Assembly: GCF_006345805.1 (NCBI RefSeq)
Contig: NC_043025.1
Span: 310,001-374,000, forward strand
Reading direction: 5' to 3'
Length of the DNA: 64,000 bases
Source: Octopus sinensis
Lineage: Eukaryota
Shown here: piece after piece, positions 4,138-27,114 of the stretch
Position numbering within the stretch: position 1 is the stretch's first letter
Layout: every line of letters begins with the position of its first letter
The notes under the pieces: model-generated
Told to the model about the DNA's origin: nothing
The model's input: the letters and a program-made list of their open reading frames with translations, nothing else
The model's database searches: none
Program-made: the position numbers and the translations under genes

Positions 4138-4347
4138 GATTATGTTCAGTTTGACATCAAGAACCATCGGGAAATGACACCATTGCTTTTAGCTGTCTCT
4201 GAGGGCCACGTCGGAATGGTGCACCAGCTGATAGCAAAAGGTGCAGACGTAAATGTTGTCAATAATGAAGGCAACAATTGTCTGCACCTGGCTGCGAAGA
4301 CGAAGAGGTTTCATTCCGAGGTTGAACCTTTAAGTATTTTAGATAAG
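4138..4347 (+). CDS. Internal exon of an ankyrin-RING-death-domain gene; ankyrin repeats (DYVQFDIKNHREMTPLLLAVSEGHVGMVHQLIAKGADVNVVNNEGNNCLHLAAKTKRFHSEVEPLSILDK)
   Basis: Acceptor ...tttttaactctacaaag| and donor |gtaagt at 4348; 210 nt, phase 0/0; ankyrin consensus TPLLLAV-x2-GH...GADVN...GNNCLHLAA. Confidence 0.9.
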
Positions 4348-5028
4348 GTAAGTTTGGAAATTGTTTATGAATATATATGTGTGTGTGTGTGGTGTGTGTG
4401 TGTGTGTGTGTGGTTTTGAAAGAAGGAGAGTGAGAGAGCGAGAGAGACAGACAGACAAACATTGACTGTCATGTCTCAATTCACACTCATCAACCTTTCT
4501 TTTAAGTAACCCAGTCCCCCACTTGATAGCCTTAGTTATATTTTGTAACTAGGAAAATTCCATCTCCTGCTACCCTCAAAGCCATGGCCTCTCTACCATA
4601 AAGAAGGTAGCCTATCTTGGACATTGGTCATATAAACACAGCCATTACTGTGTAGAGAAGAGGTGACCTCCTGAAGAGAGGAAATATTCCTTAATAATAA
4701 TGATACAGGTGACATGATAAAAGATAACCTTTATGGTGCTGGTGCCATGATAAATACATCCAGTCCATTCTATGAAGAATTCTTCAAAAGGAGAGATATC
4801 ATATATGCTCTGGCGTTCTGTGGAAATGCCATAACAATGTTGAATCTCAGAACACTAGAGAATGGATACAATGAATTAGGGTCCTTAGGGAGTTTTCCCT
4901 GCATTTAAGCATTGTATGTACAACTACACACACACACACACATATGTTAATATATATATATATATGTATATGTAGATGGCAACGGCTAAATGTATGTGTG
5001 TGTGTAAAGCTAACGACCTATATATATA

Positions 5029-6482
5029 TCATCATCATCGTCGTTTAACGTCCGTTCTCCATGCTAGCATGGGTTGGACGGTTCGACCGGGGTTCTGGGA
5101 AGCCAGAAGGCTGCACCAGGCTCCAGTCTAATTTGGCAATGTTTCTACAGCTGGATGCCCTTCCTAACGCCAACCACTCCGTGAGTGTAGTGGGTGCTTT
5201 TTACGTGCCACCTGCACAGGTGCCAGGCGGGGCTGGCAACGGCCACGGTCAGATTGGTGTATTTTATGTGCCACCGGCACGGAAGCCAGTCGAGGCGGTG
5301 CTGGCATCGGCCACGAGTCGGATAGTGCTTTTTACGTACCACCAGACCAGGGATCCTGGCTGGTTCAATTCGATTTCGCTTGCCCCAACATGTCTTCACA
5401 AGCAAAGGGGGTTGGCAAGGGTGCCTGTCGTACGGTCGCATTGGAGTATTTTACGTGCCACGGCCACGAGTCGGATAGTGCTTTTTACGTACCTCCAGAC
5501 CAGGGATCCTGGCTGGTTCAATTCGATTTCGATTTCGCTTGCCCCAACATGTCTTCACAAGCAAAGGGGGTTGGCATGGGTGCCTGTCGTACGGTCGCAT
5601 TGGAGTATTTTACGTGCCACGGCCCCGAGTCGGATAGTGCTTTTTACGTACCACCAGGCCAGGGATCCTGGCTGGTTCAATTCGGTTTCGATTTCGATTC
5701 GATTTCGCTTGCCCCAACATGTCTTCGCAAGCATGGGGGGTTGGGATGGGTGTCTGTCGTCGGATGAGGTTCTATATCGACTTCGCTTGCCTCAACCGGT
5801 CTTTGTGTCCAAGGGAGGAAAGGCATTCATAAGTGGGCTGGGCTCACTTGTCCTGCCTGGTCTTCTCACGTACAGAATATTTCCAAAGGTCTCGGTCTCT
5901 GGTCATTTCCTCAGTGAGGCCTAAAGTTCGAAGGTCGTGCTTCACCACCTCGTCCTAGGTTTTCCTGGGTCTACCTCTTCCACGGGTTCCCTCAACTGCT
6001 AGGGATTGGCACTTTCTCACACACCTATCTTCATCCATTCTCGCCACATGACCATACCAGCGCAATCGTCTCTCTTGCACACCACAACTGATGCTTCTTA
6101 GGTACAACATTTCTCTCAAGGTGCTAACGCTCTGTCGAGTATGTACACTGACATTACACATCCATCGGAGCATACTGGCTTCATTCCTCACGAGCTTACG
6201 CATGTCCTCAGCAGTCACAGCCCATGTTTCGCTGCCATGTAGCATGGCTGTTCGTACACACGCATCATACAGTCTGCCTTTTACTCTGAGCGAGAGGCCT
6301 TTAGTCACCAGCAGAGGTAAGAGCTCTCTAAACTTTGCCCAGGCTATTCTTATTCTAGCAGTTACACTTTCAGCGCACCCACCCCCACTACTGACTTGGT
6401 CACCTAGATAACGGAAGCTATCAACTACTTCTAGTTTTTCCCCCTGGAAAGTGACGGAAGTTGTTTTCTGCAGATTTTCGGA
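5029..6482 (-). mobile_element. 5'-truncated RTE-clade LINE: post-RT C-terminal region, 3' UTR with about 155-bp tandem units, (GAT)n tail
   Basis: Minus strand encodes VVDSFRYLGD...RIRIAWAKFRELLPLL...LHGSETW...RRLRWYGHVARM...GRGRPRKT; flanked by (TA)n. Confidence 0.92.
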
Positions 6483-6484
6483 GG

Positions 6485-6577
<93 letters not shown>

Positions 6578-6584
6578 GATAGAT

Positions 6585-6730
6585 CACTGGCCACTTCTCA
6601 TTCTTTATTTTCTCTCCTTATTTATTTCTGTGTTGCTTTGTGTGGAAGTGTGGAAGAGCGTAGGCTCGAAAGGTTAAAGTCTTTTTTTGTCTACGCTACT
6701 TGTCTTCGTCTTTTTTTGTGAATTCTCCCT
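6585..6730 (+). mobile_element. PLE-type non-autonomous repeat with a degenerate hammerhead region
   Basis: gaagagc-gtag-gctcgaaaggtt stem II/GAAA motif like that at 1665-1699, but the CUGANGA core is missing. Confidence 0.45.
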
Positions 6731-6788
6731 ATATATATATATATATATATATATAGGGAGAATTCACAAAAAAAGACGAAGACAAGTA
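6697..6788. repeat. Perfect 92-bp palindrome centred on (TA)13
   Basis: tacttgtcttcgtctttttttgtgaattctccc-(ta)13-gggagaattcacaaaaaaagacgaagacaagta. Confidence 0.95.
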
Positions 6789-6789
6789 A

Positions 6790-6823
6790 GAGCTGCGGCC
6801 ATGGTGATGCACCGCCGTTTTTA

Positions 6824-6878
<55 letters not shown>

Positions 6879-7205
6879 ATATATATATATATGTGTGTGT
6901 GGTGTGTGTGTGTGTGTGTGGTGTGTATATATATTATATATATATATATCATATATTATATATATATGTATTATATATATATATATATTATGTATATATA
7001 TATATAATATATATAATATATATATTATATATTGGTTGTCAAGCGAAAGTAGTTACACAAACACATTCTCACGCAATCATACACATACACACGAGGCTAT
7101 AGCAGAAAACTTTTGCCCAAAGTGCCACGTTGTGGGACTGATCCAGGAACAATGTGGTTAGTAAGCATGCTACTTACCACACAACCATTCTTGCGCCTAT
7201 ACATG

Positions 7206-7241
<36 letters not shown>

Positions 7242-7501
7242 ATATATATACATATATATATATAATATATGATATATATATATATATAAATATATACACA
7301 CATATATATACACACATATATATATATATATATGTATATATATACATATATATATAATATATGATATATATATATATAAATATATACACACATATATATA
7401 CACATATATATATATATATAATATATGTATATATATACATATATATAATATATGATATATATATAATATATACAACACACACACACACATATATATTATA
7501 T

Positions 7502-7566
<65 letters not shown>

Positions 7567-7601
7567 TAAAAACGGCGGTGCATCACCATGGCCGCAGCTC
7601 T
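6790..7601. repeat. Inverted repeat of a LINE-tail motif plus TA/GT microsatellite arms around a SINE head
   Basis: agagctgcggccatggtgatgcaccgccgttttt (6790-) is the exact reverse complement of aaaaacggcggtgcatcaccatggccgcagctct (-7601); the adjoining microsatellite interruptions also mirror each other. Confidence 0.8.
7095..7200 (-). mobile_element. tRNA-derived SINE head (octopus OR2/CORE-type)
   Basis: Minus strand ataggcgcaagaatggttgtgtggtaag...cctggatcagtcccac...gcactttgggcaaaag: A-box/B-box-like head followed by a CORE-like segment. Confidence 0.7.
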
Positions 7602-7612
7602 GAGCTGAAACT
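7568..7612 (+). mobile_element. Tail-only retrocopy of a CR1-like LINE 3' end inside (TA)n
   Basis: Nearly identical to the 3' terminus of the LINE at 9608-11245. Confidence 0.7.
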
Positions 7613-7969
7613 TAATATATATATATATATATACATATACAAATCATGCAAAGGCATTCACATCTATCCATCACTTTTGTTAACCGTTGCAGAATTCAAG
7701 CAACTCCCTGCTACCCGTATAAATAAAGGACACTTGAAATGTGGGACTATTTTTTTAACAGTTGATGATTATCTGTGTATTGTAGTAATGTCTACTTTGG
7801 TGTGAGAAACCTACTCTGGCAGCCAGTGACCTCTCCACCGACTGGAATTTTCCATCCGACAAACAGTTCGAACAGTTTATCAACTATAATGTGTTGGTGC
7901 ACATACTCAATCGTGACACCAGTTCGTTCTTCTCTTTCGTCACATTCATCATCAAAACAAATTTTTTTA

Positions 7970-8345
7970 TTAATTCATCATCATCACGTTTTTCTATGCT
8001 GGCAGACGCTGCACTCTTTGACAGGAACTGGCCAGCTGAGGAGCTATCAGGGCTCCATGTCTGTTTCCGTATGCTTTCTATGACTCAGTCCTTTGTCATC
8101 TGCTCTGTGCGGCCCAATGTCTAATGGTCCTTTCTCACCGCTTAATCACACGTCTTCCTGGGTCCACCCCTTCCGCACTTTCCTTCCACAATCAAAGATC
8201 TGCACTTCTTGATGCAGCTGTCTTCATCCATATGCATTACATAATAATACCATCGCAGTCTTCTCTCTCGCACACAACATCCGATGCCTTATATATCCAG
8301 CTTTTCTTTCAAATCCACTTAATTAAGGAAACATTATTGATCTGT
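7970..8345 (-). mobile_element. Degenerate RTE LINE 3' fragment
   Basis: (CAT)n tail on + strand; minus strand resembles RRLRWY...MDEDSCIKKC of the RTE copies. Confidence 0.65.
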
Positions 8346-8349
8346 TTAG

Positions 8350-8600
8350 ATATGTCTGTGTGTTTTTGATTTAGTTATTATGCTTGAGGGCCTTGTTATG
8401 TTGTTGGTATTCTCTTTTCTGGTATAACTTACATTATTTGGGTTGTTATGCTTATATATACAATACTCTTCCGTAAGTATTTCTCTTGCTGTGGCCATTT
8501 GGCTTTATCAAGCCAGTTGTAGAGATAGGTTCTTGTTGGTTTGTTGTCTTTCATTATTGTGACATTTCTGTCCTTATATTTTGTATATTTGACTTGATGT
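8350..8600 (-). mobile_element. Possible decayed Penelope GIY-YIG endonuclease fragment
   Basis: Minus strand YNWLDKAKWPQQEKYLRKSIVY resembles the PLE CNC...CPL.G.CL.KSIVY pre-GIY motif; heavily decayed. Confidence 0.3.
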
Positions 8601-8955
8601 TATAATAACTTTATATTGTGTTTTTATTGAATAGTTTGTGACATTTGTGATTGGCAAGTAAATATTTACTCATTAAATATCATTGTTAAGCAATAACGTT
8701 AACCACTAATGTGCGTTTTGTTCAATATAATGATCATAATTTTTGTCTTAATGTAGAGCGTAAAGTAAAAACAAATGATAATGAAAAGTGGACTCAACTA
8801 AGAGATGATGTAAGAAATCAACGCTGTGTGAATAGTTTAATCACTGGAGAAACAAACTATGTGTAAATGTAGTTGAACTGTTGTGTAATTTGGGGCATCT
8901 TTAGTATATGTTTGTGTAATCTTTAACTCATCATTTTATATTTCATCATTTGAAG

Positions 8956-9131
8956 TACTTAAAACATCTGAAACTGGGAAAGAAAGAAAGGTACTCTGAT
9001 GTGGTAGTTGCTTGCTACCTAGCCCACCACGGGGCCAACTTTTACTGTAAAAACAAAATTGGCAGAACACCATTGGACCTAATAGAAAAGGAAAATTTAA
9101 AAAAGACGTTAAATATGTTATTCCCACCGCA
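8956..9131 (+). CDS. Internal exon; degenerate last ankyrin repeat, mind-bomb-like (YLKHLKLGKKERYSDVVVACYLAHHGANFYCKNKIGRTPLDLIEKENLKKTLNMLFPPQ)
   Basis: Acceptor tttcatcatttgaag| and donor |gtaagt at 9132; phase 0 in, phase 2 out, compatible with both neighbours; GANF...KN..G.TPLDL motif. Confidence 0.88.
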
Positions 9132-9607
9132 GTAAGTATTCACTGGCAATGACAAGATAAACCATTACATTTTCTATTTTGTATATAACCGTGTTTATAT
9201 GTTTATATTGTTTTAATTCTACTGATACATTATACTGTCTTAGTGGCTTAATGAAAGGTTACACAACAGTAAGAAGAACAATAAACAATATGCAGTTGTT
9301 AAGCTAATTAAAGAAAGAACACTATTTTGATTACATTCAAATGATTGGTTGTGTTGACTTTTATACCTCTCCTAAAATCCCCACCCACCTCTCTCAGTTC
9401 CCTATTTTAAAGATTTGGGACCAATGAGAAAATGTAGAAGTAAATAGTGAAGTGATGGAATTTATCTGTCTACCAACAGATTTTCCCTCTGTCTTCTCTG
9501 TCCCACCCAGTCATGTCCATGTGAGCTATCCTGAGAAAATCACTACAAACACATACAATGAGTGTACATACATGGATACATACATACATACGTATTTTTG
9601 TTTCCTT

Positions 9608-11245
9608 GTTTCAGCTCAGAGATGCGGCCATGCTGATGCACCGCCATTTTTTTGCTACATTGTTATTACGACGAACCTCGTCTAATATATGGCACTTGGT
9701 GAAGAATGGGGTTTGACATAGCTACTCTCATTTGCACCTCTTGCCGTGAGGTAGGTTCATCTGGGACTCTCGACAGGAAGATGTCCAGCTTTGATTTAAA
9801 AACCGCTACATCTACTTTGTGCAAGTTCCTCAGACTCTTTGGGAGAATATTAAAAAGCTGTGGGCCCCTGAAACCCAGGCTGTTGCAGAAGCTGGTCCTG
9901 AAGCGTGATGACATTGCTGGGATCTTTGGCATTATGCAGTGTCGCCCCGTGCTAACATTGGTGTAGCTTACAATGCCAAAATTTGGCACAATTCCTTCCA
10001 GGATCTTCCAAGCATATATTACTGTATACCTCTCCCGTCTTCTCTCCAGGGAGTAGAGTCTTTGCTGTTTCAACCTTTCCCAGTAGCTGAGCTGTTGCAA
10101 AGAGACGATCTTCTTTGTGAATCTTCACTAGATTGCTTCAAAATCCGCTGTTAATTTTACACTGGTGGGTGACCATAGCTGTGATCAGTAATCCAGACGG
10201 CTGAGGGCGAATGTCCGCCAGTGGACCATCATGGTTTCCTTATCTCTGGTTCTGAATGTTCTTAGGATCCACCCAGCCAGTCGTTTTCACTTTGTTGCCA
10301 TCCTGGTAACGTGCACTTGGAAAGAGGTATCATCACTCATGTCGATACCCAGGTCCGTCACAGACTTAGGCTCTGGGATTGAAATTCCCTGTGGACCGGT
10401 GTATCATGTAAGTTTAATATTCAGTTTTGGATGCTGGTAGCACAAGGCCTGGATTTTTTTAGCATTAAACTGCATATTATTATCCTCAGCCCATCTGTAG
10501 ATTGAGTCCAACTCCTGCTGCAGGTGTGCAACATTGCTGGGGTTCTGTATTTTCTGCGAGACTTTCGTATCGTCTGCATAGCTGGCCAGAGTGGCTATCC
10601 GGGCATTTGAGGACATATCTGAGAGGGCCACTATAAAAAGCAGTGGTCCCAAGACAGTGCCCTGTGGAACACCACTCACTATTTGTATGTGCATAGAGGT
10701 GGTTCCATTAACCACTACTGCCTGACTCCTATCTTTCAGGAAGTCATGTAACCACACTCCAAGTTTTCCAGCTATGCCGAGGTCACGCAGTTTGTGGCAT
10801 ATCATACCATGATTCACCTTGTCAAAAGCTTTTGCAAAATCAAGGTAGATTACGTCCACATTTGATTTGTTGAGTAACTGCCTCAACACCCAGTCGTAAT
10901 GTTGTAAGAGCTGGGTCAGGCAGCTCCTACCTGGTCGAAAACCACGCTGGGTATCACTCAGCAAGTTATTTTCCTCAAGGAATGCGATTAGTTTCTTTCT
11001 GACTATCCGTTCCATGACTTTGCTGATGTGTGAAGTTAGAGAGATAGGCCTATAGCTTTTGGCATCTGCTCTACTTCCCCCTTTATGTATTGGGCATATT
11101 ATTCCCTCCGTCAGCTTGCTTGGCAGTTTATCATTTGTAAGAATCTTGAGGGGTTTTGCCAGGGCATGCTTACACGCTTTGAGGAGGATTGCTGGGAAAC
11201 CATCTGGACCAGTAATTGAGTTTGTGTCCACTTCATCTATGGCAT
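9608..11245 (-). mobile_element. 5'-truncated CR1/L2-like LINE (RT and C-terminus) with hairpin 3' tail
   Basis: ORF fragments 10404-11309 and 9666-10100: YRPISLTSHISKVMER, YLDFAKAFDKV, SGVPQGTVLGPLLF, YADD, LYSLERRRERY. Confidence 0.93.
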
Positions 11246-11398
11246 TTATACACGCATACATGGATACATAGATATATACTAACATATATATGTATATACA
11301 CACAAACATATATTTATCTTTTTATCTTATATTAAACTTTTTAATACTTGTTGATAGTTATATATATTTGATATATAAATGTATATATAAATGTATAT

Positions 11399-12616
11399 CA
11401 TCATCGTCATCATCATCGTCGTTTAACGTCCGTTCTCCATGCTAGCATGGGTTGGACGGTTCGACCGGGGTTCTGGGAAGCCAGAAGGCTGCACCAGGCT
11501 CCAGTCTAATTTGGCAATGTTTCTACAGCTGGATGCCCTTCCTAACGCCAACCACTCCGTGAGTGTAGTGGGTGCTTTTTACGTGCCACCTGCACAGGTG
11601 CCAGGCGGGGCTGGCAACGGCCACGGTCAGATTGGTGTATTTTATGTGCCACCGGCACGGAAGCCAGTCGAGGCGGTGCTGGCATCGGCCACGAGTCGGA
11701 TAGTGCTTTTTACGTACCACCAGACCAGGGATCCTGGCTGGTTCAATTCGATTTCGATTTCGCTTGCCCCAACATGTCTTCACAAGCAAAGGGGGTTGGC
11801 AAGGGTGCCTGTCGTACGGTCGCATTGGAGTATTTTACGTGCCACGGCCACGAGTCGGATAGTGCTTTTTACGTACCACCAGACCAGGGATCCTGGCTGG
11901 TTCAATTCGATTTCGATTTCGCTTGCCCCAACATGTCTTCACAAGCAAAGGGGGTTGGCATGGGTGCCTGTCGTACGGTCGCATTGGAGTATTTTACGTG
12001 CCACGGCCCCGAGTCGGATAGTGCTTTTTACGTACCACCAGGCCAGGGATCCTGGCTGGTTCAATTCGGTTTCGATTTCGATTTCGATTTCGCTTGCCCC
12101 AACATGTCTTCGCAAGCATGGGGGGTTGGGATGGGTGTCTGTCGTCGGATGAGGTTCTATATCGACTTCGCTTGCCTCAACCGGTCTTTGTGTCCAAGGG
12201 AGGAAAGTCATTCATAAGTGGGCTGGGCTCACTTGTCCTGCCTGGTCTTCTCACGTACAGAATATTTCCAAAGGTCTCGGTCTCTGGTCATTTCCTCAGT
12301 GAGGCCTAAAGTTCGAAGGCCGTGCTTCACCACCTCGTCCCAGGTTTTCCTGGGTCTACCTCTTCCACGGGTTCCCTCAACTGCTAGGGATTGGCACTTT
12401 CTCACACACCTATCTTCATCCATTCTCGCCACATGACCATACCAGCGCAATCGTCTCTCTTGCACACCACAACTGATGCTTCTTAGGTACAACATTTCTC
12501 TCAAGGTGCTAACGCTCTGTCGAGTATGTACACTGACATTACACATCCATCGGAGCATACTGGCTTCATTCCTCACGAGCTTACGCATGTCCTCAGCAGT
12601 CACAGCCCATGTTTCG
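11399..12616 (-). mobile_element. 5'-truncated RTE LINE, near-identical to 5029-6482, with a 12-bp target-site duplication
   Basis: TSD ataaatgtatat at 11387-11398 and 12617-12628; ORF 12229-12603 ends at the native stop. Confidence 0.95.
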
Positions 12617-12630
12617 ATAAATGTATATAG

Positions 12631-12746
12631 ATTTAAAATTAAAGATTTTAAATTATTAATTTATATTTATAAATTTATATATATATATATATATATATAT
12701 AAATTTATAAATATAAATTAATAATTTAAAATCTTTAATTTTAAAT
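12631..12746. repeat. Perfect 116-bp AT-rich palindrome centred on (AT)12
   Basis: 46-bp arms at 12631-12676 and 12701-12746 are exact reverse complements. Confidence 0.93.
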
Positions 12747-12871
12747 TTAAATAATTTAAATTTTAAATTTTATATTTTACATATTTTGTATGTTATATTA
12801 ATTATTTTTATTTCTATGTTTTGGTTTATGTTTTTCATTGTTTGATTTGCCTAATTGAAATTATATGTATA

Positions 12872-13718
12872 CTAGCAGAATTGCCCGGCGTTGCTCGGGG
12901 CTGAATTGCTTGAAAGTACTGTTAATGATTGCACTGAATTATGATGATTATTCAGGCAAATATTGATATAAGCTTACGGTGGGAGATAAGGACTTAACGA
13001 TCAAACGTGTGCCATTGCATTGTTTTGGGGGAACCAAATTTCTGATGAGCATTATAGGGGCACCAACTTTAAGTTTGAGAAAGTGTGGTGGTAGTCCGGG
13101 GTGCTCAAAGGAATTGAGTACCTCTATTGGATAGTTGATGACGTCCTCTGGGTCAGGAGTTGTATCGATAGACTGATATACATAGACTTCCCCAGGAATG
13201 AGTTTTAGCATTTCATCATTAATATGGTGAACAGTTTTATTCCTCGGGGCCAGTATAGCCTTTTTGCCAATCCAATCCATATTCTGATAATTAGCTTGTA
13301 GATCGGGGAACACTGCATCTCTGAGATCAGAAGGCGTCTTAACAATGGTACAAATGGAATCGATGGCAATTTTACCATTTTCATCCCCTGGTATTTTGCC
13401 TTCGCCAAGTGCAAGGAGGGTGTGAGGAAATGCTGCTGATGTGATATTACGTCACATCTGAGCACGCATATTGGTGTGAAGTTTGAGAGTTACTTCCGTT
13501 TATTTTTAAAAATATGCATTAAAATGGAAAAAAATGATGGTAAATTATTTGTAAAATCATAGACTCATCGTAGACGCGCGCTAATACCCAGAAGGGCTCG
13601 ATATGAATCATGACTATAAGATACCCGGTTTTGGTTAAACTGCATCGCAAAATGTGGGAGTAGTTAGGAATCTAAATCGGAGTAGACAGACACACAACCT
13701 TTCTTTTATATATAAAGA
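12872..13718 (-). mobile_element. Complete non-autonomous Helitron (847 bp) retaining a PIF1-like helicase fragment
   Basis: Minus strand starts TCTTTATATATAAAAG and ends with hairpin gccccgagcaacgccgggc plus CTAG; inserted between A and T; encodes AILAPRN...LKLKVGAPIMLIRNL...CNGTRLIV. Confidence 0.92.
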
Positions 13719-14395
13719 TTTTCGTCCTAAAAAACTTTGTATGGAGTGAATGGTTACCTCTTTGGAAATATATACACACACATTATACATACATGTGTGT
13801 ATAGATGAATATATAAATACATTTAAATATCTATATACACTTTTGGGCGATCTCTCTGTTTCTTAGAGATAACTTTAGATCTTATTTTCGTCATAAAAAA
13901 CTTTGTATGGAGTGAATGGTTACCTCTATGGAAATATATACACACACGTTATACATACATATGTGCATAGATGAATATATAAATACATTTATATATCTAT
14001 ATACACTTTTGGGCGATCTTTGTGCTACTTAGAGATAACTTTAGATCTTATTTTCGTCCTAAAAAACTTTGTGCGGAGTGAATGGTTACGTCTATGGAAA
14101 TATATACACACACATTATACATACATCTGTGTATAGATGAATATATAAATACATTTAAATATCTATATACACTTTTGGGCGATCTTTCTGCTACTTGTAT
14201 ATACTTTAGATCTTATATTCGTCCTAAAAGACTTTGTATGGAGTGAAAAGTTACCTCTATGGAAATATATACACACACATTATACATACATCTGTGTATA
14301 GATGAATATATAAATACATTTAAATATCTATATACACTTTTGGGCGATCTTTCTGCTACTTGGATATAGGTCTTATATTCGTCCTAAAAAACTTT
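13719..14395. repeat. Tandem array of about 166-bp monomers, 4 full copies plus a partial
   Basis: ttcgtc(c/a)taaaa recurs at 13721, 13887, 14053, 14218 and 14378. Confidence 0.95.
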
Positions 14396-14559
14396 CCTGT
14401 CACACACTCACGCACACGCACACACACACACGCACCCTCACACACACACACACGCGCACACACACACACACTCACACACACGCACACACACACGTTAGCT
14501 TACAATTTTATTTATATATTTGCGTGTCTATGTGTGTAAAGAGGAAGTGGCAGGGTTAA

Positions 14560-16339: not shown

Positions 16340-16482
16340 ATGTCGCTGGTGTCAAAAGAACATGGCCACCGTGAGACTGCAACCATGTGGAGATCTTGTT
16401 CTCTGCGAGAATTGTTCTTCTGAAATGACATTTAAGAGATGCCCCATGTGTCGAGGATACACACTCAGCAAAAGTGAATTTG
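16340..16482 (+). CDS. Internal exon; RING finger of MIB/IAP (C3HC4-like) type, CRWC-x11-CGD-x3-CENC-x8-CPMCR
   Basis: Acceptor tttatattttgttccatag| and donor |gtaaga at 16483; phase 2 in (CA+A = Gln), phase 1 out; Cys spacing C-x2-C-x11-C-x-D-x3-C-x2-C-x8-C-x2-C. Confidence 0.9.
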
Positions 16483-17980
16483 GTAAGATAATATTTGGGG
16501 CTCTGTTTGTTGTCTTGTTGACCTTATTGTGTGGAATAATGTGCTTCGTGTAGACCCAGGTATGTCATAATGGGACAGATTTATGATAGGTGTCCCTGAG
16601 GTCTTTTCTTTGTGACAGTATATCTATCACTACATCCACTAAATATTGCCTTTACCTAATTTTGAGATGTCACACTTCAAGATGTCTGTCAGGATATGTT
16701 GTTTAGGTACGTACCCTGAATGTCTCTTTAGGTACGTACCCTGAATTATAAGAAATTAACAAGATTAAAAATCAAATCTCTAACATTATAAGTATAATGA
16801 TCATTAACGTTGATTAAATATTAAATTTAGTATTGAACGGTGAACATCTGTTTGCATTTAAACAAAATATTGGTGTTGACATAAAATATAAAGATAGGAA
16901 TAAAATATGAGTTCCCTGTGTGACTTGATCTCACAAATCCTTGTTTGTATCTATATATAATATACACTTATTACATTGTTTGAACAACATTTACCATCCA
17001 TATAGTCATTATTTTTCTCACTCTTGTTAGATTTTTAGATGATATTAATGCTAAAAGAGGCACAATTTTCTGAATGTTTCACCCTTTGGTCTTGATTGTT
17101 GCGTTCAAATTATTTAATGAAAGATAGTCATTGTTATTTGACCAGGAAATGAATTAATCATTAGTATTTGGCAGTGGACTTGGTTATATCTTTCTTCGTT
17201 TGCTCATGGAACTACCATAATATTAGCTGTGCTGAGACACAATCATATTCATAGTAATGAAGGTTATATGTTCTTTACTCAGATTATATACAATCTATAT
17301 TGATATCTAGTATTGCACCGTCAAGCACAGTGCCATTGTATCACATATATACCCAATTATCATGATAATTAATAAGCTATAATTCATTAACTCTCTTACA
17401 TTTGTATGTATGAAATGTAAACTTATTTTGTCATAGGAACATTGTGTACCCTCACCTAACATTTTACAACTTGTTAGGGATCATGTTGTGGAGATGATTT
17501 TTAGGGGACAGATTGTGTGTGGGATGGAGGGTATGCACATAAAGAACATGTCTTTATGGGCTCAGTTTTACTTAATTAGAGAGGAATGTTGATTAGTGAA
17601 TTCTAGAGATGAGAGTACTGTGCCATGCCATAGGTTTGGAACAGTTATAAGAAAAGAAAGACAAAGCTAAGAGAAAACTCTTATCAAGTGTTAATTAAAT
17701 GAGATAATTGCAACATTGTTAGAATATTTAATGTGTTTTTAGAGAGAGAGAGAGAGAGAGGGTGGATTTAGGAATGTTAGTCTCTTTTATTGTGGACATA
17801 TTGGGCTATTACATGGGACCACTGTAGAAAGTACAGAAATATTGACCAAAACCATAATGGTCAACATTTGACCGGTAAGGTCACCAATTGAATGACTCAC
17901 AATAACAAGATAGAGTTTAATAAAAATAAAGATGAAGAAAGTTTATTTTTAAATGTAAAACTTGGAAATATTTATTTCAG

Positions 17981-18058
17981 AGGCTCCAAAGTTTGAAGAC
18001 AGGTGTGTAAAAAAAGAGGCTACATGTCAGGAATTAGGGGCTGCATCTCAGGCAATAG
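17981..18058 (+). CDS. 78-nt symmetric phase-1 linker exon (EAPKFEDRCVKKEATCQELGAASQAI), mini-exon array unit 1
   Basis: Canonical ggaaatatttatttcag| acceptor and |gtgagt donor; 3n length, open frame, phase-compatible with the RING and death-domain exons. Confidence 0.7.
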
Positions 18059-18304
18059 GTGAGTATAAAATAATAGTTCCCAATTGATTTCTGTAAGGTT
18101 ACTTCCCCCGAGGATTTTCTGCTCGAAAGAATAACTGAAAACAGCTTCCATTCCTATTTTCCAATTGAACGATTATCTGTATAATAATTGAATTAAAGAT
18201 ATCGATTTACTGAGAGTTTATGAAATACCCATTGAGGTTAATGCTGTTGGTAATAATGTTCAAATTAGAAGACACAATAGAGTTAAATTTGTCAATTGGT
18301 CACA

Positions 18305-18700
18305 GAACTCATCATCATCATCATTATCATCATCATCATCATTTAACATCCGTTTCTTATGGCGGCATGGGTCGGACGATTTCACTGGCAAGGCAGTAGG
18401 CTGCGCCAGGCTCCAATGTGATCTGGCAAGGTTTCCACATATGTATGCCATTCCTAATGCCAACCACTCTGAGAGTGTGGTGGGTGCTTTTTACGTGCCA
18501 CCGACACAGGAGCCAGTCGGGGTGGGGGCTGGCATCGACCACATTCGGATGGTGCTTTTTACGTGCCAGCGGCACAGGGAACTAGTCAGGCGGCAGTGAC
18601 AAGGACCTATGCTTCTATGGTACTTATAACGTGACACAGGAACAGGTGCCAGTCAGGCGGCACTGGCATCGGTCACAACTACAATTTCCATTTTGATTTC
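18305..18700 (-). mobile_element. Old RTE-3'-UTR-type element with (GAT)n tail
   Basis: (CAT)n followed by sequence homologous to 5040-5330. Confidence 0.7.
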
Positions 18701-20039
18701 GATCTTGAATTGCTTTTGATTTTTCATTTCTGTTATTGCCTGGTGGACTATGATGAAAACGAGGGGTTTAGGAATGATCCCTAGTGAACTCCTACTTCTA
18801 TCCGGAATTCTTCACTATACTCATTGCCGATCCTCACCTTACTACAGGGCTCTTCAACTCTTATAATCGCTCGTCAATCCCTAGTTTCCGCATTAGCTGT
18901 AAAAAGGATTCTATTAAATATTCCACTGAAATTTCATAAAATCAAGGTTAACGTGGTTGGTAAAATGGTTAAATAAGAAGACATAATAGAGTTAAGGATG
19001 TCTTTTAGGACAGAGAACTAAAATATTTCGTTGTTTATTTGTAAACAGGTGAGGTAACGAGAAAGATTTTGTTTCTTTTGCTACTAAGGTCTTTCCTAAG
19101 TTTTCTGATAGTTTATTGTTGTTGTTATTATGTAGCCAGATGTCTATCAGGATATGTTGTTTAGGTACGTGCCCTGAATGTCTCAGGTCAGAATAGCATT
19201 GTTATAAATTAAAGAATTTAAAAATCAAATCTCTAAGATTATAAGTATAATGATCATTAACGTTGATTAAATATCAAATTTAGTATTGAACGGTGAACAT
19301 CTGTTTGCATTTAAAAATATTGGTGTTGACATAAAATACAAAGATAGGAATTAAATATGAGTTCCCTGTGTGACTTGATCTCACAAATCCTTGTTTGTAA
19401 CTATATATAATATACACTTATTACATTGTTTGAACAACATTTACCATCCATATAGTCATTCTTTTTCTCACTCTTGTTAGATTTTAGATGATATTAATGC
19501 TAAAAGAGGCACAATTTTCTGAATGTTTCACCCTTTGGTCTTGATTGTTGCGTTCAAATTATTTAATGAAAGATAGTCATTGTTATTTGACCAGGAAATG
19601 AATTAATCATTAGTATTTGGCAGTGGACTTGGTTATATCTTTCTTCGTTTGCTCATGGAACTACCATAATATTAGCTGTGCTGAGACACAATCATATTCA
19701 TTGTAATGAAGGCTATATGTTCTTTACTCAGATTATATACAATCTATATTGATATCTAGTATTGCACCATCAAGCACAGTGCCATTGTATCACATATATA
19801 CCCAATTATCATGATAATTAATAAGCTATAATTCATTAACTCTCTTACATTTGTATGTCTGAAATATAAACTTATTTTGTCATAGGAGCATCGTGTACCC
19901 TCACCTAACATTTTATATCTTGTTAGGGATCATGTTGGGGAAGGGTGTATGGAATTTAGCTTGTGGAGATGTTTTTTAGGGGACAGATTGTGTTCAGGGT
20001 GGGGGGTATGCACATAAAGGACATGCCTTGATGGCCTCG

Positions 20040-20520
20040 ATGTTACTTAGCCAGTTGGGTCTTTTCAAGCACAGAAAATTGCTGATTGTCTCAGTCGTTT
20101 TAGTTATCTTCCCGTGTGAAGCTCAGCATCTGAACATCATTTCTCACCACTTTGCCCCATGTCTTCCTCAGTCTTCCTCTTCCTCAGCTTCTCTCCACAT
20201 TTAGAGATCCGCATCTCTTTATGCTGATCACCTCATCCATATGCATCACATAACCATACTATGAAAGATCTCTCTTTTGAACTCTACATCGGATGACTCT
20301 TATACCCAGATTTGCTCTTAAGACATTTCCACTGCGACTTACCTGAACACTGATGTTGTACATCCAGTGAAGCATGCTGGCTTCATTTGACTCCGACCCT
20401 TTGCATGTCTTCTATCTTCACAGCCTATCTTTCATTATTGTGTTGTACATCTGTCCGTACACAGGTCTCATACAATCTGCTTTCCACTCTTAGGGAGAAG
20501 CCCTTCGTTACCAACAGAGT
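20040..20520 (-). mobile_element. Degenerate RTE LINE fragment
   Basis: Homologous to 5900-6310 (KGFSL...LY...CVR; GRPRKTWG..VR). Confidence 0.7.
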
Positions 20521-20641
20521 GGGGGGATTTGGGTCGGTTAATCTTGACTATTGGCTATAGGAATATTTCACAATTATAAAATATCGATGTTCATTAAAGA
20601 AATTTTACTATAAAGTATAATCTTGGAAATATTTATTTCAG

Positions 20642-20692
20642 CAAGGCCAATATTTGAAGACAAAGAGGTCCAGACAGTAGAAGAACCACGTG
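20642..20692 (+). pseudogene. Paralogous 51-nt phase-1 mini-exon (ARPIFEDKEVQTVEEPR) with dead donor, array unit 2
   Basis: Same ggaaatatttatttcag| acceptor; open 3n frame; donor reads |ctgagtata where paralogues have |gtgagtata; downstream intron is homologous to the other units. Confidence 0.6.
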
Positions 20693-22719
20693 CTGAGTAT
20701 AGAATGACATTACATAATTGATTTCTATAAATTTTAGCTTTTACTGAGCTATTTTGGTCAATAGAATGACCGAGAACAGGTTCCAATGTTATATTTCATT
20801 TGAATGCTTAGCTATAAAGAAATTCTGTTCTTCTACAACAACACGAATATCCAATAAATGTACTTTATGCAAACATCAGTTACTCATTCACTCGCAGAAC
20901 GAAAGATTCAAAAATTAAATATAAACCCTGAAACGGTTCTCTCCCGTTAAGGAGAATATTCGCCCTGTTTGTCATCTCATTGTACTCATTCATTCTCTCT
21001 CTCTCTCATTCATGCTCTTTCTCTCCGTCTTTTCAAGAAAGATGCTGGTTAAAAGTTTCAATACAATAAATGATATCATCTTCATCTTTTCTCATCTGCT
21101 CTCCATGCTCCCATACACTAGGTGGGTCATCACTGTCCAAGTCAGTTGTATCTGAAATTACTGCCAACCGTCATTTGTTGAGGAAAACATCTCACTTAAA
21201 CATTGCAGCTTTTCTAAGGTGGTAGACCCTTTCTAACCCCAACCACTTTATAAAGGGTCCTGGGTATATTTTATTGTCGCACAAGCATTAGAAATGATCA
21301 TCAATTTCCCAACAATATCAAACGTTCCTTTCAAACTTGTGGTGTCATCTTTCCTAGTTTCCACCAGCCACTTCCTAGTGTGTTCTGGGAGCATTTAATT
21401 ATAGCACAAGTAGTAATCAAGTTGTGTTACATTCTATATAATTAGACGGTCCTCACTACTCTATGATGTTTTATTTCACTGAAGCTGATGACATTTTCAG
21501 GAGGTGAGAAGGGAATGTGATGACAAAAGAATCAGGATGCGGGGAGAGAAATTTGCAATACCCCCTCTCCCGGCTGTGGGGTCTTTGTCTTACATGTCTT
21601 TTGGCTAAGTATGCCAGTACTTGTGCTTTATACAAAGGGGTCACGTACACTCTGTGGGGTGGTTGGCATCAATAAGAGCATCCTACCGTAGAAAACCATG
21701 CCAAAGAAACCATCTGGGGCCTGGTGCAGTTGTCTGGCTTGTCAGATCCTGTCAAGATTTCCAACCCATTCCAGCATGGAAAACAAACTTTGAATGTTGA
21801 TGATGATGATGCTGTCTTCCAGTAACTCATCATAATTCTTTGTCTTAGATTGTTACAGTAGTTTCCTGTCTGGTATAAAATATTAGCTCAGTATAATAAT
21901 ATCGATTGTGAAAACCGGTTCAGTGATTTTGATAACATTCATATTGAACAGAGAACATATGTTCACATTTGAACAAAACATTGATGTTAACATATGCAAT
22001 ACATGGAAAGGAATGAACGTATGAGATTCCAGTGTGACTTGAACTCACAACTCTTTTCTAACTATATATATATATAATTATCGCTTGTTACGATGTTTGA
22101 ATAACGTTTACTGTCCATATATAGACATCGTTATACTGACAATTGTTGGCTTTGAGATGGTTTCAATTGTAAGAGAGTCACTGTTTTCAGTCTTTCACAT
22201 TTTGGTTTTACTTCCGACTTGATTGTTATGTTGAAATTAGATCATGGAACCTGGTCATTGTTATTTGACCAAGAAAAGAATTCATCATTAGTATTCGGTA
22301 CTGGAAATGGTTACATTTTTCTATGGTTTCTCATGGAACTACCATAATATCAACTGTGCTGAGACACAACCATATTAATTGTAACAAATGTCACATGTTC
22401 TTCACACAGAGTTTATACAATCTATATTGATAGTTAGTGTTTAAACGCCGCATTAACATGATAATTAATCAGCTATCATTCATTAACTCTCTTACATTTG
22501 TCTGTCTGGAAGTTTCATAGCATTATCTTGTACCCTCATCTGATATTTTACACCTTGTTACCCTCAAAGTTAACATAACTTTTATATGGGTACACAACCA
22601 CATCCCTACGAACTAGTTTTTACAGCTGTATGCCCTTCCCACAATAATAAAGTGTTGATTATCAATAACTATAATGAAATTATACTATAAAACGTAAAAC
22701 TTGAAAATATTCATTTCAA

Positions 22720-22767
22720 AGACTCCAACTTCTGTGAAGGATGCCTTGACAACATCACAGCCAGTTG
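22720..22767 (+). pseudogene. Paralogous 48-nt phase-1 mini-exon (ETPTSVKDALTTSQPV) with dead acceptor, array unit 3
   Basis: Acceptor reads gaaaatattcatttcaa| (AG changed to AA); donor |gtgaga intact; open 3n frame; flanking introns homologous to the other units. Confidence 0.55.
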
Positions 22768-23559
22768 GTGAGAAGCAAATAACAGTACCTCATGGATTTC
22801 TATGAATTTAACCTTCACCTGAGCATTTGTAGTTTATCAGAATGACTGAGGACAAGATCCATTCCTAATTTACATCTGAAATATTAGCTGTATAATAATT
22901 CTATTAGACATTTTGATATCAATGGAATTTCACAAAATAGTCAACGGGGTTGGCATGGTTCGGAAAATGGATAATTTAGAAGACAATAGAATTAATACTG
23001 TATTTTGAAACGGAGGACTAAAATATGTAGTTACTAAGTTTACTGATAGGTTATTGCTGTTGTTGCTATTTAGGCAAATGTCTCTCATAATGTGACAGAT
23101 TTACAATGAAATGTGTTCCGTATGTGAACACCCTGCCTTTTTCTTTCACTGATAATAAATTTATCATTACATCCCCTAAACATTGTCTTTATCCATGTAA
23201 AAGTATTAGGTTTGATGTTGAGACAACCGTTCTCTCTCTCCCTCTCTCTCCAAGATAGACACTGATGACCCTCATCATTTATCATCTGATGTCTATGCTC
23301 CTATCGATTGGATGGATGATTCCTATCCATGTCAGTTCTTATTAACAAATACTGTCCGCCTTGATTGGATGAGGAACACATTCCGGCTTTTCTATGGTGA
23401 TGTGCCTTTCCTAACATCAACCACTTTAAAAAGGGCCTTGGGCACAATTTTGCTCCAAAAGCCCTAGAAAAATGATCATGTCGTCAACAAAATTAAACGC
23501 TCCTCTTTAACTTCTACAAGGAAATTCTGTTTGCAGATACTGAGAACAGAAAGCTAAAA

Positions 23560-24450
23560 TACAATAAAGATGAACTGGATGGATATATGCAGGAGATCCA
23601 AAGCAAAAGCAATGATTCCCATTCATAGACAGTTTGAAATGTCCATTGAAACCAGCAATCAAATACCGATTGATTAGTTCAGACTAATTTCAACCTTGAA
23701 TATTGATGGCGAGATTTACAAGGTTGTATTCACAAAGAGATCAACTGTAAATCTACAGAATAATGAATATGGGACTAAAAGTATCTCGAAGACTGGAATC
23801 CTCTGGCATTCCTGGCTGTGTGGAACCTGTGTCTTAAATCTAGGATGTGATACAAGACGGAAAGAAGATTAAAAGGGATTGAATGTTGTGTGATTTGATC
23901 TGGTTTATGGTTCTCTAGCAAACAAATTGTTGATGGAAGCAGTGGACCTGTTTTATATATGAGAAAAGATTAAGGATCTGATGAGGAGCTGCTATAACAA
24001 TTTCAATATGCAGTTCTTGAGGAAAACTTTCTCGGCAGACTGGTATCATTTTGAAACGGGAATTGCTGTAGTTTCTACAATATCAGTCATTTGGTTTGTG
24101 ATTGTTATGGAGATGTTACTTAAATCAGCAGATTGATAAGAAATGGCTCAAAGGAAAACACTCGAGAAGACATTAATGGATTACATAACAATAGTAACAA
24201 CAAATAAAAGGATATGCAAATAGTTCTGGATTAACTGGGTAGACTGAGGAACTTGGTGAAGAATGTGATTCAATGCAAATGAGTAATGAAGCCAGTCATT
24301 TCTGAAAGGTCAGCAGAAACAAGTGAAGGTCAAAATAGCAGGAGAAACCCTGATGAAGTTTAAAGGGAAACTTGAAAAACTATTACGACGATGGTACACT
24401 ACCTAATTTTGCAATAAGAGTAAAGGCATTGAGATCAAGTCACAGAACGA
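23560..24450 (+). mobile_element. Decayed RT fragment of an RLE-type (R2/NeSL/HERO-like) non-LTR element
   Basis: Relics such as GIPGCVE, DL..YGSL.NKLL, DWYHFETGI, TISVIWFVIVMEMLLKSA and FMD-like motifs, with many stops. Confidence 0.5.
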
Positions 24451-25271
24451 AGATGGTTAAAAGAAACAAATATGCCAAACATTCTGGAAAATAAAAGATT
24501 TGGAGCTCTCACTTTGTATTCCCGTCTTTCTTATATATTTTTGAGTATCAGTCCTTTTGTACCATTTCAGATGTCTTCACTGCAATAATGTGTAGATGTC
24601 CAGTTGTATGTAGTGAATGGGGTTTTGTGCAAGTGTACATTGTTTTAGGACACCTGATATCACTTTTTGTTTCATCTTTGGAGAACTGATCATTGCTCAC
24701 CTGTATTTAGGAGTCTTAAAATATTCCCTGCACCAGATAATGACCAGGTGAACTGGGATGTGGGATGATAAAATTCAAGATTTCCAACAGCAAAGAGAAC
24801 AGGTATTACGTTTATTTTACTTGAAGTGGTGTGTCATGCAATTCTGACGAGATCTTTGGAGACCACATTGGATGATATTGGACTTTAGCAGAAGATGAGG
24901 AGAATGGTGGTTAGTGAAGTGTAGAGTTCAGAGGACAGTCACATGTCATAGATTTGGTACAGATATATGAAAGGAGAGAGAGAACTATGAAATGATAATT
25001 GAATGAAATAATTGCAACATTGTTAGATTATGTAGGATGTCTCTGTTAAAGAGAAACAAGGTTTCGGAAAGTTAGTCTATTTTGTTGCGGGCCTAAATAT
25101 TGAGCTATTACCTGGTCCCACAATGGAAAGTATAAAAATACTGAGCAAAACCCTAGTGGTTACCAGCCAACCACTGATGATAACAATGTCCCACAACAAT
25201 AAACTACAGAATATTTATAGAGATAAATAAGTTTTACAATAAATTATAAAAGCTGGAAATATTTATTTCAG

Positions 25272-25343
25272 AGAGTCCAGTTCTGAAGGAGAAAGATCTT
25301 CTGAGAGTGGCTAAGAGGTTAGGACGTGATTGGTGGCAAATAG
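25272..25343 (+). CDS. 72-nt phase-1 exon encoding the death-domain N-terminal helices (ESPVLKEKDLLRVAKRLGRDWWQI), array unit 4
   Basis: ggaaatatttatttcag| and |gtgagt; L..VA..LG.DW..I is the death-domain helix 1-2 signature. Confidence 0.85.
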
Positions 25344-26199
25344 GTGAGTATATTTGATTTCTATATATTTTACTTTCACCTGATCTATTTTATTTGTCAG
25401 AATGAATGAGAACAAGTTACATTCCTCATTTCCAATTGATAGGTTATCTGTATGACAATTTTATTTACGATATTCCTGATATTTCATAAAATATCCACTG
25501 AGGTTAGCATGGTTGGTAATAATGGATAAACTAGAAAACACAAATGGCGTTTAATATTATCTTTTGGAAGAGGGAACTAAAATATATTGTTTAAGGGTAA
25601 ACAGGTGAGTGAATTTGTTTTACATTTTCTTTAGGTTCACTGTTAGGTTATTGTAATGAAGGACAAGTACCAAAGTTCACATCTAAAACAAAGCATCTTT
25701 ATTCAAACAGAAAACTTTGAGTTTGGTTCTTCTTGCAGTCATTATTTATTGGGTTATTGTGTTGGAAGCTGATAATTCCAATTTATTTTGCCATTTTGCA
25801 ATAACTTTACCACATGACATATGTCTGTAAATGCTTCAATAAAAAGAGATTTAATAAAGGTGACACAGCGAAATCCTATCATTCTCCTCAGGCGAAAACA
25901 GAGAATTCCTTTAAGGGAATTTACCAGAAAATGAACATTCACAAGTCAAGCCGAACTGCAGGGGGCATCTCTCATTCAGACTGACATAATAATAACTGAA
26001 TAGGCTCTGTAGAATTGATCGAACCTGGAGTTCATTGGAGAAGTTTGAAATGGGATTGAGTTTGACTTAGAATTATCGACTGTTGGACAATCACTGATCA
26101 TTCGATTTCCAGTGTCCTCTTGGGAACTTTGCAAGGTAGTAGATGACACAGAGGGACAGTACTTTCATGACCCTTTGAATACCAGTTCTGAAATCTAAC

Positions 26200-26530
26200 A
26201 GAATATGACAGATGTATGGGGTTCTTCTAAAGGGTCTTTGGAGTAATGTTACTCAATAGGATTTACAGTTCAGAGATCTGGGAGTCTCTCCAGGTTGAGC
26301 CACGTCTCCTCCACATCTGTGGTACCTCGGACATGTGATCAGGGTGTTGCAGCAATGAATTACAGGACAGGTTCTCAAAGTCAAACCAATGGAACAGGAT
26401 ACCGAGGGGGAGGCCAAGAAAGAAATGGTTGGATGATATCCATAGTCTTAGTTCTTCACATCATAGAATACAAGCAGAATGTCTAATGATGGATGCTTCT
26501 GACAGGACCCTATGGAGGAGGTGCCTGAGG
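26200..26530 (+). mobile_element. Decayed RTE-like LINE C-terminal fragment
   Basis: GRPRKKWLDDI near 26405-26445. Confidence 0.45.
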
Positions 26531-26914
26531 ACTCTTTCCCCACAGCCCTTTCAAGAATATTGAGCAGAGGAAATGGATGGATCATATGCTTTCACTGTTG
26601 GAGGTCAATGTTAATTCTTGAGGTTCTGATATACTTTTGCCTTCACAAAAGTTTTCCTGCCCTCGTTTACCATATATTTTCTCCCGTATAATTTTCAATT
26701 AATTTTCTTTAAAAATCTCGTTTAATTCAAACTCTTTGTTATTTTTGTCAATAGAAAACAATGTCTTATATTTTTCATGTTTCTTAGCTATTTCTTTTTT
26801 TACTTCTCTATTGATAAAGTTTGTTTGTTATATTCATAACAACCTACAGTACACAGCGTTTTATGTTATTGTCAGTGTTGTTGCATTTATTTCTTATTGT
26901 TGTGTCTTTTGCAG

Positions 26915-27114
26915 TTATTGTTTTAGAAGTTGATACAACTAAACTGAAAATTGATGATGAGTCTAATGTCACTGTAAAACAAGGCTACCAGATTCTTTAC
27001 GAATGGTTCAAAAATTGCGACCCAGAAACACGGACACACGCAACATTACGTGCAGCTCTTGAAGAAGCTGAATGTTTCGCTGCGATGGAATGTCTGTCAT
27101 TAGACGCAAAGTGA
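26915..27114 (+). CDS. Terminal coding exon; rest of the death domain (VIVLEVDTTKLKIDDESNVTVKQGYQILYEWFKNCDPETRTHATLRAALEEAECFAAMECLSLDAK-stop)
   Basis: Acceptor gtgtcttttgcag|, phase 1; ILYEW...T...L..AL pattern of death-domain helices 4-6; TGA at 27112-27114; the six canonical exons sum to 879 nt = 293 codons. Confidence 0.85.

Follow-up and report, generated by a model that had tools for sequence, protein, structure and literature searches.

An Octopus sinensis gene predicted to join MIB2-type ankyrin repeats and a single RING to a death domain

Exon structure and linker cassettes

The window considered here is a stretch of 64,000 nucleotides from Octopus sinensis (RefSeq assembly GCF_006345805.1, contig NC_043025.1, positions 310,001 to 374,000 of the forward strand), an AT-rich and repeat-laden piece of animal DNA. 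Between positions 4138 and 27114, on the plus strand, it holds the last six exons of a gene whose predicted product combines ankyrin repeats, one RING, a linker and a death domain (DD). The AG/GT sites of all six exons are canonical, and the joined exons give 879 nucleotides in frame, with no internal stop and a terminal TGA. A first-pass annotation of this DNA had proposed precisely such a six-exon model; its coordinates, exon count and length were all exact, and the 292-residue spliced translation is identical to residues 159-450 of the O. sinensis RefSeq protein XP_036370783.1 (P0001, 450 amino acids). Residues 1-158 of that protein consist of ankyrin repeats only and are encoded upstream of the window, with no match anywhere in the window and no exon of theirs in positions 1-4137. 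Searched with tblastn, the window contains no paralogous copies of the gene, the decayed linker cassettes described below excepted.

The first exon (4138..4347; 210 nucleotides, phase 0-0, acceptor aaag/G, donor AAG/gtaagt) encodes residues 159-228 of P0001, which comprise one full ankyrin repeat and the start of an interrupted last repeat (DYVQFDIKNHREMTPLLLAVSEGH...LSILDK), and matches Pfam Ank with 44.5 bits. The second (8956..9131; 176 nucleotides, gaag/T and CA/gtaagt, residues 229-287) carries the second half of the interrupted repeat (VVVACYLAHHGANFYCKNKIGRTPLDLI), a segment that aligns with the equivalent ACYLAQEGADV of Gekko MIB2, and then leads into the RING. The RING exon follows at 16340..16482 (143 nucleotides; CRWCQKNMATVRLQPCGDLVLCENCSSEMTFKRCPMCRGYTLSKSEF) and encodes a zf-C3HC4_3 domain of the IAP/MIB type in which the fourth zinc ligand has changed from His to Asp. 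Next come a linker cassette exon, L1 (17981..18058; 78 nucleotides, phase 1-1, EAPKFEDRCVKKEATCQELGAASQAI), and death-domain exon 1 (25272..25343; 72 nucleotides, phase 1-1, ESPVLKEKDLLRVAKRLGRDWWQI, residues 361-384), both with canonical sites. The latter encodes helix 1 and the start of helix 2, which are helical with high confidence in the AlphaFold model. Death-domain exon 2, with the stop codon, completes the gene (26915..27114; 200 nucleotides, VIVLEVDTTKLKIDDESNVTVKQGYQILYEWFKNCDPETRTHATLRAALEEAECFAAMECLSLDAK). Its acceptor tgcag/TT at 26915 is the one used by RefSeq, and a second AG lies 12 nucleotides downstream. A five-exon model of 789 nucleotides, which lacks L1 and takes the last acceptor at 26927, yields no Death match and is contradicted by the RefSeq protein. 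A scan for a separate missing exon of 90 nucleotides was unconvincing; the 90 nucleotides are made up of the 78-nucleotide cassette L1 and the 12 nucleotides gained from the earlier acceptor at 26915.

RefSeq gives five isoforms of the gene (X1-X5). Isoforms X1-X3 contain L1 and differ in their upstream ankyrin exons, whereas L1 is skipped in X4. In X5 the RING exon is spliced to another cassette, L2, and translation stops there without the DD (sequence end ...SKSEFARPIFEDKEVQTVEEPRAEYRMTLHN). Since L1 and DD exon 1 are both phase 1-1, inclusion or skipping of either one keeps the reading frame. These cassettes belong to a tandem array that occupies the 8.8-kb intron between the RING and the DD (16680..25543, plus strand) and consists, by self-BLAST, of about four diverged units of about 2.5 kb. 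Each unit holds a single cassette, which is L1, L2, L3 or DD exon 1, together with a common acceptor region (CTTGGAAATATTTATTTCAG). Positions 16680-17574 and 19138-20049 are 91.5% identical, positions 19284-19925 and 21942-22560 are 72% identical, and the L1 unit (17584-18277) aligns with the unit of DD exon 1 (24902-25543) at 67% identity over 709 nucleotides, the acceptor region included. Judged by this alignment, L1 arose by tandem duplication of DD exon 1 and has since diverged.

L1 is functional, and the other two plus-strand cassettes have decayed. L2 (20642..20721; ARPIFEDKEVQTVEEPR...) retains an intact acceptor; its donor now reads G/ctgagt, and read-through produces the stop codon of X5. 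In the paralogue P0005 the L2 cassette is a spliced internal exon. L3 (22720..22767) has its frame and donor intact and its acceptor changed from AG to AA. The number of linker cassettes varies from 0 to about 6 per paralogue, and the linker is predicted to be disordered, with a predicted local distance difference test (pLDDT) score below 50 in the AlphaFold model. From the sequence, tandem duplication of the first DD exon gave rise to the phase 1-1 cassette exons of which the linker is built.

The MIB2-related half and the death domain

The ankyrin and RING portions of the protein are readily recognized. Full-length XP_036370783.1 passes the Pfam thresholds for Ank families (132-135 bits) and for zf-C3HC4_3 (38.2 bits against a cut-off of 27). 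In a BLASTP comparison, residues 10-325 of P0001 are collinear with residues 442-864 of MIB2 from Gekko japonicus (P0294; E=4e-32). The alignment starts at the first ankyrin repeat, extends as far as RING1 and takes in the interrupted last repeat (...HLA...FHSEV... insert ...VVVACYLAHHGANF...TPLDLI). When the last-ankyrin-plus-RING region of a longer family member is used as the query, the best named matches outside Octopus that cover both ankyrin repeats and RING (94-98% of the region) are vertebrate MIB2 proteins with MIB_HERC2, ZZ and SH3_15 domains.

The first-pass annotation described the product as a mind-bomb-like E3 ligase and pointed to the upstream exons as the place to look for MIB_HERC2 and ZZ domains. 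The likeness holds for the collinear ankyrin-RING part, and the remainder of a Mind bomb protein is missing. In the full 450-residue RefSeq protein, whose N-terminus is that of the RefSeq model, there is no Pfam match to MIB/HERC2 (PF06701), ZZ (PF00569) or REP/SH3_15 (PF18346), and the only matches are to Ank, RING and DD. The MIB2 proteins in the hit list carry all three of the missing families and measure about 950 amino acids. P0001 also has a single RING stretch, compared with two in MIB2 and three in MIB1, and an Asp among its zinc ligands. Because the MIB/HERC2, ZZ and REP domains and the second RING are absent, the protein is not a MIB orthologue; its ankyrin-RING half derives, by sequence homology, from the C-terminal half of a MIB2-type E3 ligase gene. 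A canonical MIB1 or MIB2 orthologue that acts on Notch ligands, with its MZM and REP regions merely lying upstream of the window, would account for the 'MIB2' and 'MIB1-like' labels that several isoforms and paralogues bear in RefSeq, and for the homology of the ankyrin-RING part to MIB2. Set against the domain content of the full protein, its size, its single RING and its position as one among dozens of paralogues, such an orthologue is given almost no credence here.

The RING itself is closest to those of the cellular inhibitors of apoptosis. A profile of the family RING matches cIAP1 best among solved structures (1.3e-10), followed by cIAP2 and XIAP, all at about 1e-10, and a Foldseek search with the RING part of the AlphaFold model, where pLDDT is about 70-76, returns the RINGs of cIAP2, IDOL and MUL1. 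Membership of the inhibitor-of-apoptosis (IAP) family was considered and rejected, as neither P0001 nor the scanned paralogues have a BIR match.

Seven of the eight zinc ligands are canonical (C-C-C-H-C-C-C-C), and ligand 4 is Asp (PCGD) instead of His. Of the 65 listed family proteins, 16 have the PCGD motif, and these come exclusively from O. sinensis or O. vulgaris. Elsewhere in the family His is nearly invariant, and it occupies this position in the other family RINGs that are readable by pattern scan, including every O. bimaculoides RING examined. In a tree of the last-ankyrin-plus-RING region, which serves only to place the Asp clade because the MIB2 outgroup sits on a very long branch within the family and the rooting is uninformative, the Asp RINGs fall inside a well-supported O. 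sinensis/O. vulgaris clade (100/97). The O. bimaculoides sequences lie outside this clade, and Asp therefore appears to be the derived state.

The change to Asp is either tolerated, with Asp serving as a zinc ligand, or the mark of a ligase-dead subgroup. A ligase-dead product would be a scaffold or decoy in which Asp disables the second zinc site. Its action would depend solely on the ankyrin repeats and the DD, and it would serve as an adaptor or cap DD oligomers in a dominant-negative manner. The derived replacement of 'PC[x]H' by 'PCGD' in this copy and its relatives fits such a role. So does the occurrence of the family DD in proteins without a RING (P0159, P0155 and P0153) and on an adhesion G-protein coupled receptor (P0147), since a DD found without the RING can work independently of the E3 module. 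However, the Asp RINGs are intact at the seven remaining zinc ligands. They also retain the Pro that precedes C3, the CP.C motif and the hydrophobic residue that follows the domain, and within the Asp group the RING is highly conserved; all this argues for constraint over decay. Asp is also accepted as a zinc ligand in related treble-clef fingers, for instance as the last ligand of LIM domains, and this too counts against a dead ligase. A scaffold or decoy is on balance unlikely, although it retains enough weight to be kept in view.

The DD assignment is secured at the level of the family only, where profile and model comparisons place it among domains of the RIPK1/FADD/ankyrin kind. Of 25 non-redundant family DDs, 24 match Pfam Death (PF00531) at E<=0.01, the best at 8.5e-15, and the paralogues P0020 and P0047 pass the Pfam threshold with 35 and 40 bits. 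Compared with solved structures, the family DD profile finds the RIPK1 DD first (2e-14). Ankyrin-3 (1.4e-10) and ankyrin-2 take ranks five and eight among the PDB matches, and PIDD, ankyrin-1, FADD, CRADD, Fas, TNFR1 and TRADD are matched as well. The residues conserved across the family DDs are retained in the copy studied here.

A structural comparison, which the first-pass annotation had suggested as a check, bears the assignment out. The AlphaFold model of the RING-linker-DD part has a mean pLDDT of 70.9, with values of 84-90 in most of the DD. In Foldseek the modelled DD superposes on the RIPK1 DD (PDB 6ac5, 9v9e) with a template modelling (TM) score of 0.76 and a root-mean-square deviation of 2.8 A over 94 columns, and on the FADD DD with a TM score of 0.78. 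The DDs of THOC1, TNFR1 and Fas are also found, and PYD matches rank lower. These structural matches have weak E-values, none better than 0.03, which is usual for domains of only 50-90 residues.

The family and its distribution

The gene is one member of a large family. A first homology search recovered about 65 Octopus proteins of 148-457 amino acids with the same layout, which bear automatic names such as 'MIB2-like', 'MIB1-like', 'ankyrin-3' and 'PP6 regulatory ankyrin subunit'. Its members in O. sinensis are spread over at least 25 different scaffolds, many of them small and unplaced, which could include haplotigs. The present locus also shows local clustering of the family. The RefSeq gene model (isoform X1 range) extends over 272 kb of a scaffold of 17.06 Mb, and this range includes, on the opposite strand and about 18-54 kb upstream of the window, another ANK-RING-DD member of 481 amino acids, together with a gene for 105 amino acids.

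A HMMER search with a RING+DD profile against 1.84 billion representative proteins produced 209 matches at E<=1e-3. Among the best 150 of these, which were re-scanned with separate RING and DD models, the proteins with both RING and DD all score better than E ~1e-13, and every RING+DD match whose origin was looked up belongs to one of three species, O. sinensis, O. vulgaris and O. bimaculoides. As far as this profile and collection reach, with an uncertain share of decapodiform and nautilus sequences in the latter, the RING+DD fusion appears to be confined to Octopus. A DD of this type, with no RING beside it, is present in Argonauta hians (P0153) and in the O. bimaculoides 'RIPK1-like' proteins P0155 and P0159, which contain the DD only. 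The next DD matches beyond the family are multi-DD proteins of starfish, coral, tubeworm and cod. The lineage-specific domain shuffle put forward in the first-pass annotation agrees with a DD fusion that, in the data searched, is seen only in Octopus; what needs amending is the picture of a one-off event, as the gene belongs to a large existing family.

The same DD subtype is found at the cytoplasmic C-terminus of an O. bimaculoides protein of 1283 amino acids (P0147, XP_014788728.1). This protein is called 'G-protein coupled receptor 126-like' in RefSeq and a family-2 receptor of this class in UniRef, i.e. it is of the adhesion type, and LRR-like repeats can be read at its N-terminus. The combination of such a receptor with a DD is unusual.

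The size of the family bears on whether the gene model is real. As an annotation artefact or a decaying young duplicate, the locus would have DD exons that are in frame by chance or belong to a separate transcript, and its product would end earlier, in the manner of isoform X5. That X5 stops in cassette L2 without a DD, that two of the four intron cassettes are already dead and that the gene model covers 272 kb are all compatible with this, as are the many family members on small unplaced scaffolds and one O. vulgaris paralogue model with an aberrant C-terminus in place of the second half of the DD. Nevertheless, six exons with canonical sites, compatible phases and no stop are hard to reconcile with a fortuitous frame. 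More than 40 distinct proteins of three species have the RING-linker-DD order, and the retention of family-conserved DD residues in this copy speaks in the same direction. The O. vulgaris paralogue locus L001 (P0132) moreover repeats the exon layout of ANK, ANK, RING, cassette(s), DD1 and DD2. An artefact or decaying duplicate is therefore considered improbable. The product predicted at L001 (36804-36962) leaves the DD in the middle of the last exon and continues with unrelated C-terminal residues, and this aberrant end suggests that the copy is frameshifted, decaying or misassembled.

The RING and DD modules form a mosaic over the family. In 595 pairwise comparisons of its members, the percentage identity of the RINGs shows essentially no correlation with that of the DDs (r=0.11). 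Among 31 pairs with DDs at least 95% identical, 12 have RINGs that are no more than 50% identical, and P0001 and P0021, for example, have DDs of 99% and RINGs of 34% identity. Conversely, RING identity reaches 90% or more in 21 pairs, and in 7 of these the DDs are at most 55% identical. Unless many of the gene models are chimeric, this mosaic suggests exon shuffling or gene conversion between paralogues.

Proposed role, related systems and surrounding repeats

The gene model encodes a protein of about 450 amino acids with ankyrin repeats, a single RING, a disordered linker and a DD, which probably acts as a DD-recruited E3 in death-domain signalling; this account is favored here with some reserve. 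Through homotypic contacts of its DD with other DDs, the protein would dock into oligomeric signalling complexes like those of TNFR/RIPK1/FADD or MyD88/IRAK. The RING, if active, would recruit E2~ubiquitin and ubiquitinate neighbouring components or the protein itself, and the ankyrin repeats could provide a second binding surface. Inclusion or skipping of the linker cassettes, and the DD-less isoform X5, may tune or switch off the coupling between the DD and ubiquitination. By analogy with known systems, we infer that such a coupling of DD signalling to ubiquitination would serve a role in cell death or immunity.

Mammalian MIB2 offers the closest functional parallel. It binds oligomerised RIPK1 through its MZM region, ubiquitinates RIPK1, including lysines of the DD, and suppresses cell death in a RING-dependent manner (PMC5912950). 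In the octopus protein the DD may take the place of the N-terminal MZM region that mammalian MIB2 needs for RIPK1 binding. A RIPK1-like DD in that place could then be an alternative route to the same kind of complex.

Several observations weigh against the account of a DD-recruited E3. The ANK-RING-linker-DD order set out in the first-pass annotation is real, and the Ank and RING matches pass Pfam, but on its own this copy scores 14-17 bits against Pfam Death (E 0.055-0.005), where 22.6 are required; on the full protein (14 bits, E=0.055) the alignment spans positions 3-80 of the 86-position model. Compared alone with PDB, the DD of this copy reaches the DDs of FADD and PIDD at E of about 0.3-0.6 only. 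Four long helices are called in its model, where the helix-3 region is coil of lower confidence, and the domain is of a divergent subtype with a 2-residue deletion in that same region. The Asp at the fourth ligand means that ligase activity of this copy is not assured. With a divergent DD as well, both activities are less certain than the first-pass annotation took them to be. The gene models of the locus are Gnomon predictions, and the link between the upstream ankyrin exons and those in the window could be partly a modelling artefact, because the model covers 272 kb and has a paralogue nested on the opposite strand.

Each part of the proposed protein has counterparts elsewhere. Vertebrate MIB2 likewise has an ankyrin array followed by a zf-C3HC4_3 RING, with the interrupted last repeat common to both; the octopus protein differs in having no MZM or REP/SH3 regions, in its one RING with an Asp ligand and in its C-terminal DD, which is present in no MIB2 of the hit list. 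RIPK1 supplies both the top profile match and the best structural match named for the octopus DD, although the octopus protein has neither a kinase domain nor a RHIM and its DD is divergent. The nearest solved RINGs are those of cIAP1 and cIAP2 (BIRC2/3), which also unite a death-fold domain and the same RING type in one protein. That domain is a CARD in cIAPs, and it comes before the RING. The octopus protein, in contrast, lacks BIR and UBA domains, has N-terminal ankyrin repeats and places a true DD after the RING. Ankyrin repeats with a C-terminal DD are shared with ankyrins 1-3, DAPK1, ANKDD1A/B and NF-kB p100/p105. To our knowledge these proteins are all without a RING, and none has MIB-type ankyrin repeats.

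Related combinations are also known from marine invertebrates. Oyster IAPs are reported to include an architecture of RING domains and a 'DD' (Gene3D 1.10.533.10) together with BIR (PMC8917759). Kaur et al. (2021, PMC8195603) report lineage-specific expansions of death-fold and TRADD-N proteins, for the most part in marine animals that are sessile or live in herds, and few or no TRADD-N proteins in cephalopods. The octopus family resembles these expansions as a large and fast-changing set that joins an adaptor domain to repeats and ubiquitin-system domains in species-variable architectures; it differs in belonging to an octopus and in using the DD and not TRADD-N. By this comparison, its size, its turnover between sister species and its modular mosaicism are typical of immune and cell-death expansions in marine invertebrates (PMC8195603, PMC8917759).

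A wider proposal, which we advance tentatively and regard as possible though doubtful, is that Octopus has a specific repertoire of DD-targeted ligases. A 'Rosetta-stone' fusion of a MIB2-derived ankyrin-RING half with a RIPK1-type DD, whose mammalian counterparts interact as two separate proteins, would have been amplified to dozens of loci, and its RING exons, linker cassettes and DD exons exchanged between paralogues and alternatively spliced for combinatorial control of immunity or cell death.

RefSeq and UniProt already contain the gene and its relatives, some of the UniProt entries under the name 'Death domain-containing protein', and a full-text literature search turned up no description of an ANK-RING-DD family in any organism, octopus included. 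The architecture is a new one made from familiar parts, with nothing categorically new in it; the sequence-level claims are solid, and function is what we infer from them. Innate immunity and cell-death signalling are poorly known in cephalopods, and the family represents a large, fast-evolving and modular expansion of DD proteins in a group in which one survey found few death-fold/TRADD-N expansions (PMC8195603). By joining a MIB2-type ligase half to a RIPK1-type DD, it provides independent evolutionary evidence that the two modules cooperate, as well as a natural 'fused' version of MIB2-RIPK1 for study. With its cassette-exon linker and its shuffled RING and DD modules, the family is a clear case of exon duplication and shuffling in the origin of new architectures. 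It is this MIB2-RIPK1 'Rosetta-stone' aspect, together with the shuffled and cassette-built nature of the family, that is of value to comparative immunology; practical value is modest for now because the proteins are already public under misleading automatic names.

Repeats and mobile elements are abundant around and within the gene. Introns 1 and 2 each contain a copy of a 1.2-kb repeat (5029-6231 and 11407-12616), in the same orientation and 99.1% identical. The repeat has internal tandem sub-repeats of about 150 nucleotides and an apparent retroelement open reading frame tail on the minus strand, which has no Pfam match. Judging by the identity of its copies, the pair is a very recent insertion pair or intragenic duplication. 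Intron 2 further holds, on the minus strand, an RVT_1 reverse-transcriptase open reading frame (10404-11309; 116 bits) and a fragment of a Pif1-helicase 2B domain (12948-13313; 57 bits), which is probably derived from a Helitron.

Downstream of the gene lies a tandem duplication of about 7.8 kb (31975-39767 and 39748-47516; 97-99% identity) that is derived from a long interspersed nuclear element (LINE) and has endonuclease and reverse-transcriptase open reading frames. A second pair of LINE copies (50280-53766 and 55416-58951) is 93.5% identical, and a reverse-transcriptase open reading frame of 621 amino acids is located at 49799-51664. A trinucleotide microsatellite of about 800 nucleotides (59844-60665) reads as poly-Ile in one frame, and long tracts of (TA)n and (CA)n lie at scattered places in the window, such as 6421-7600, 33362-34320 and 35982-36524.

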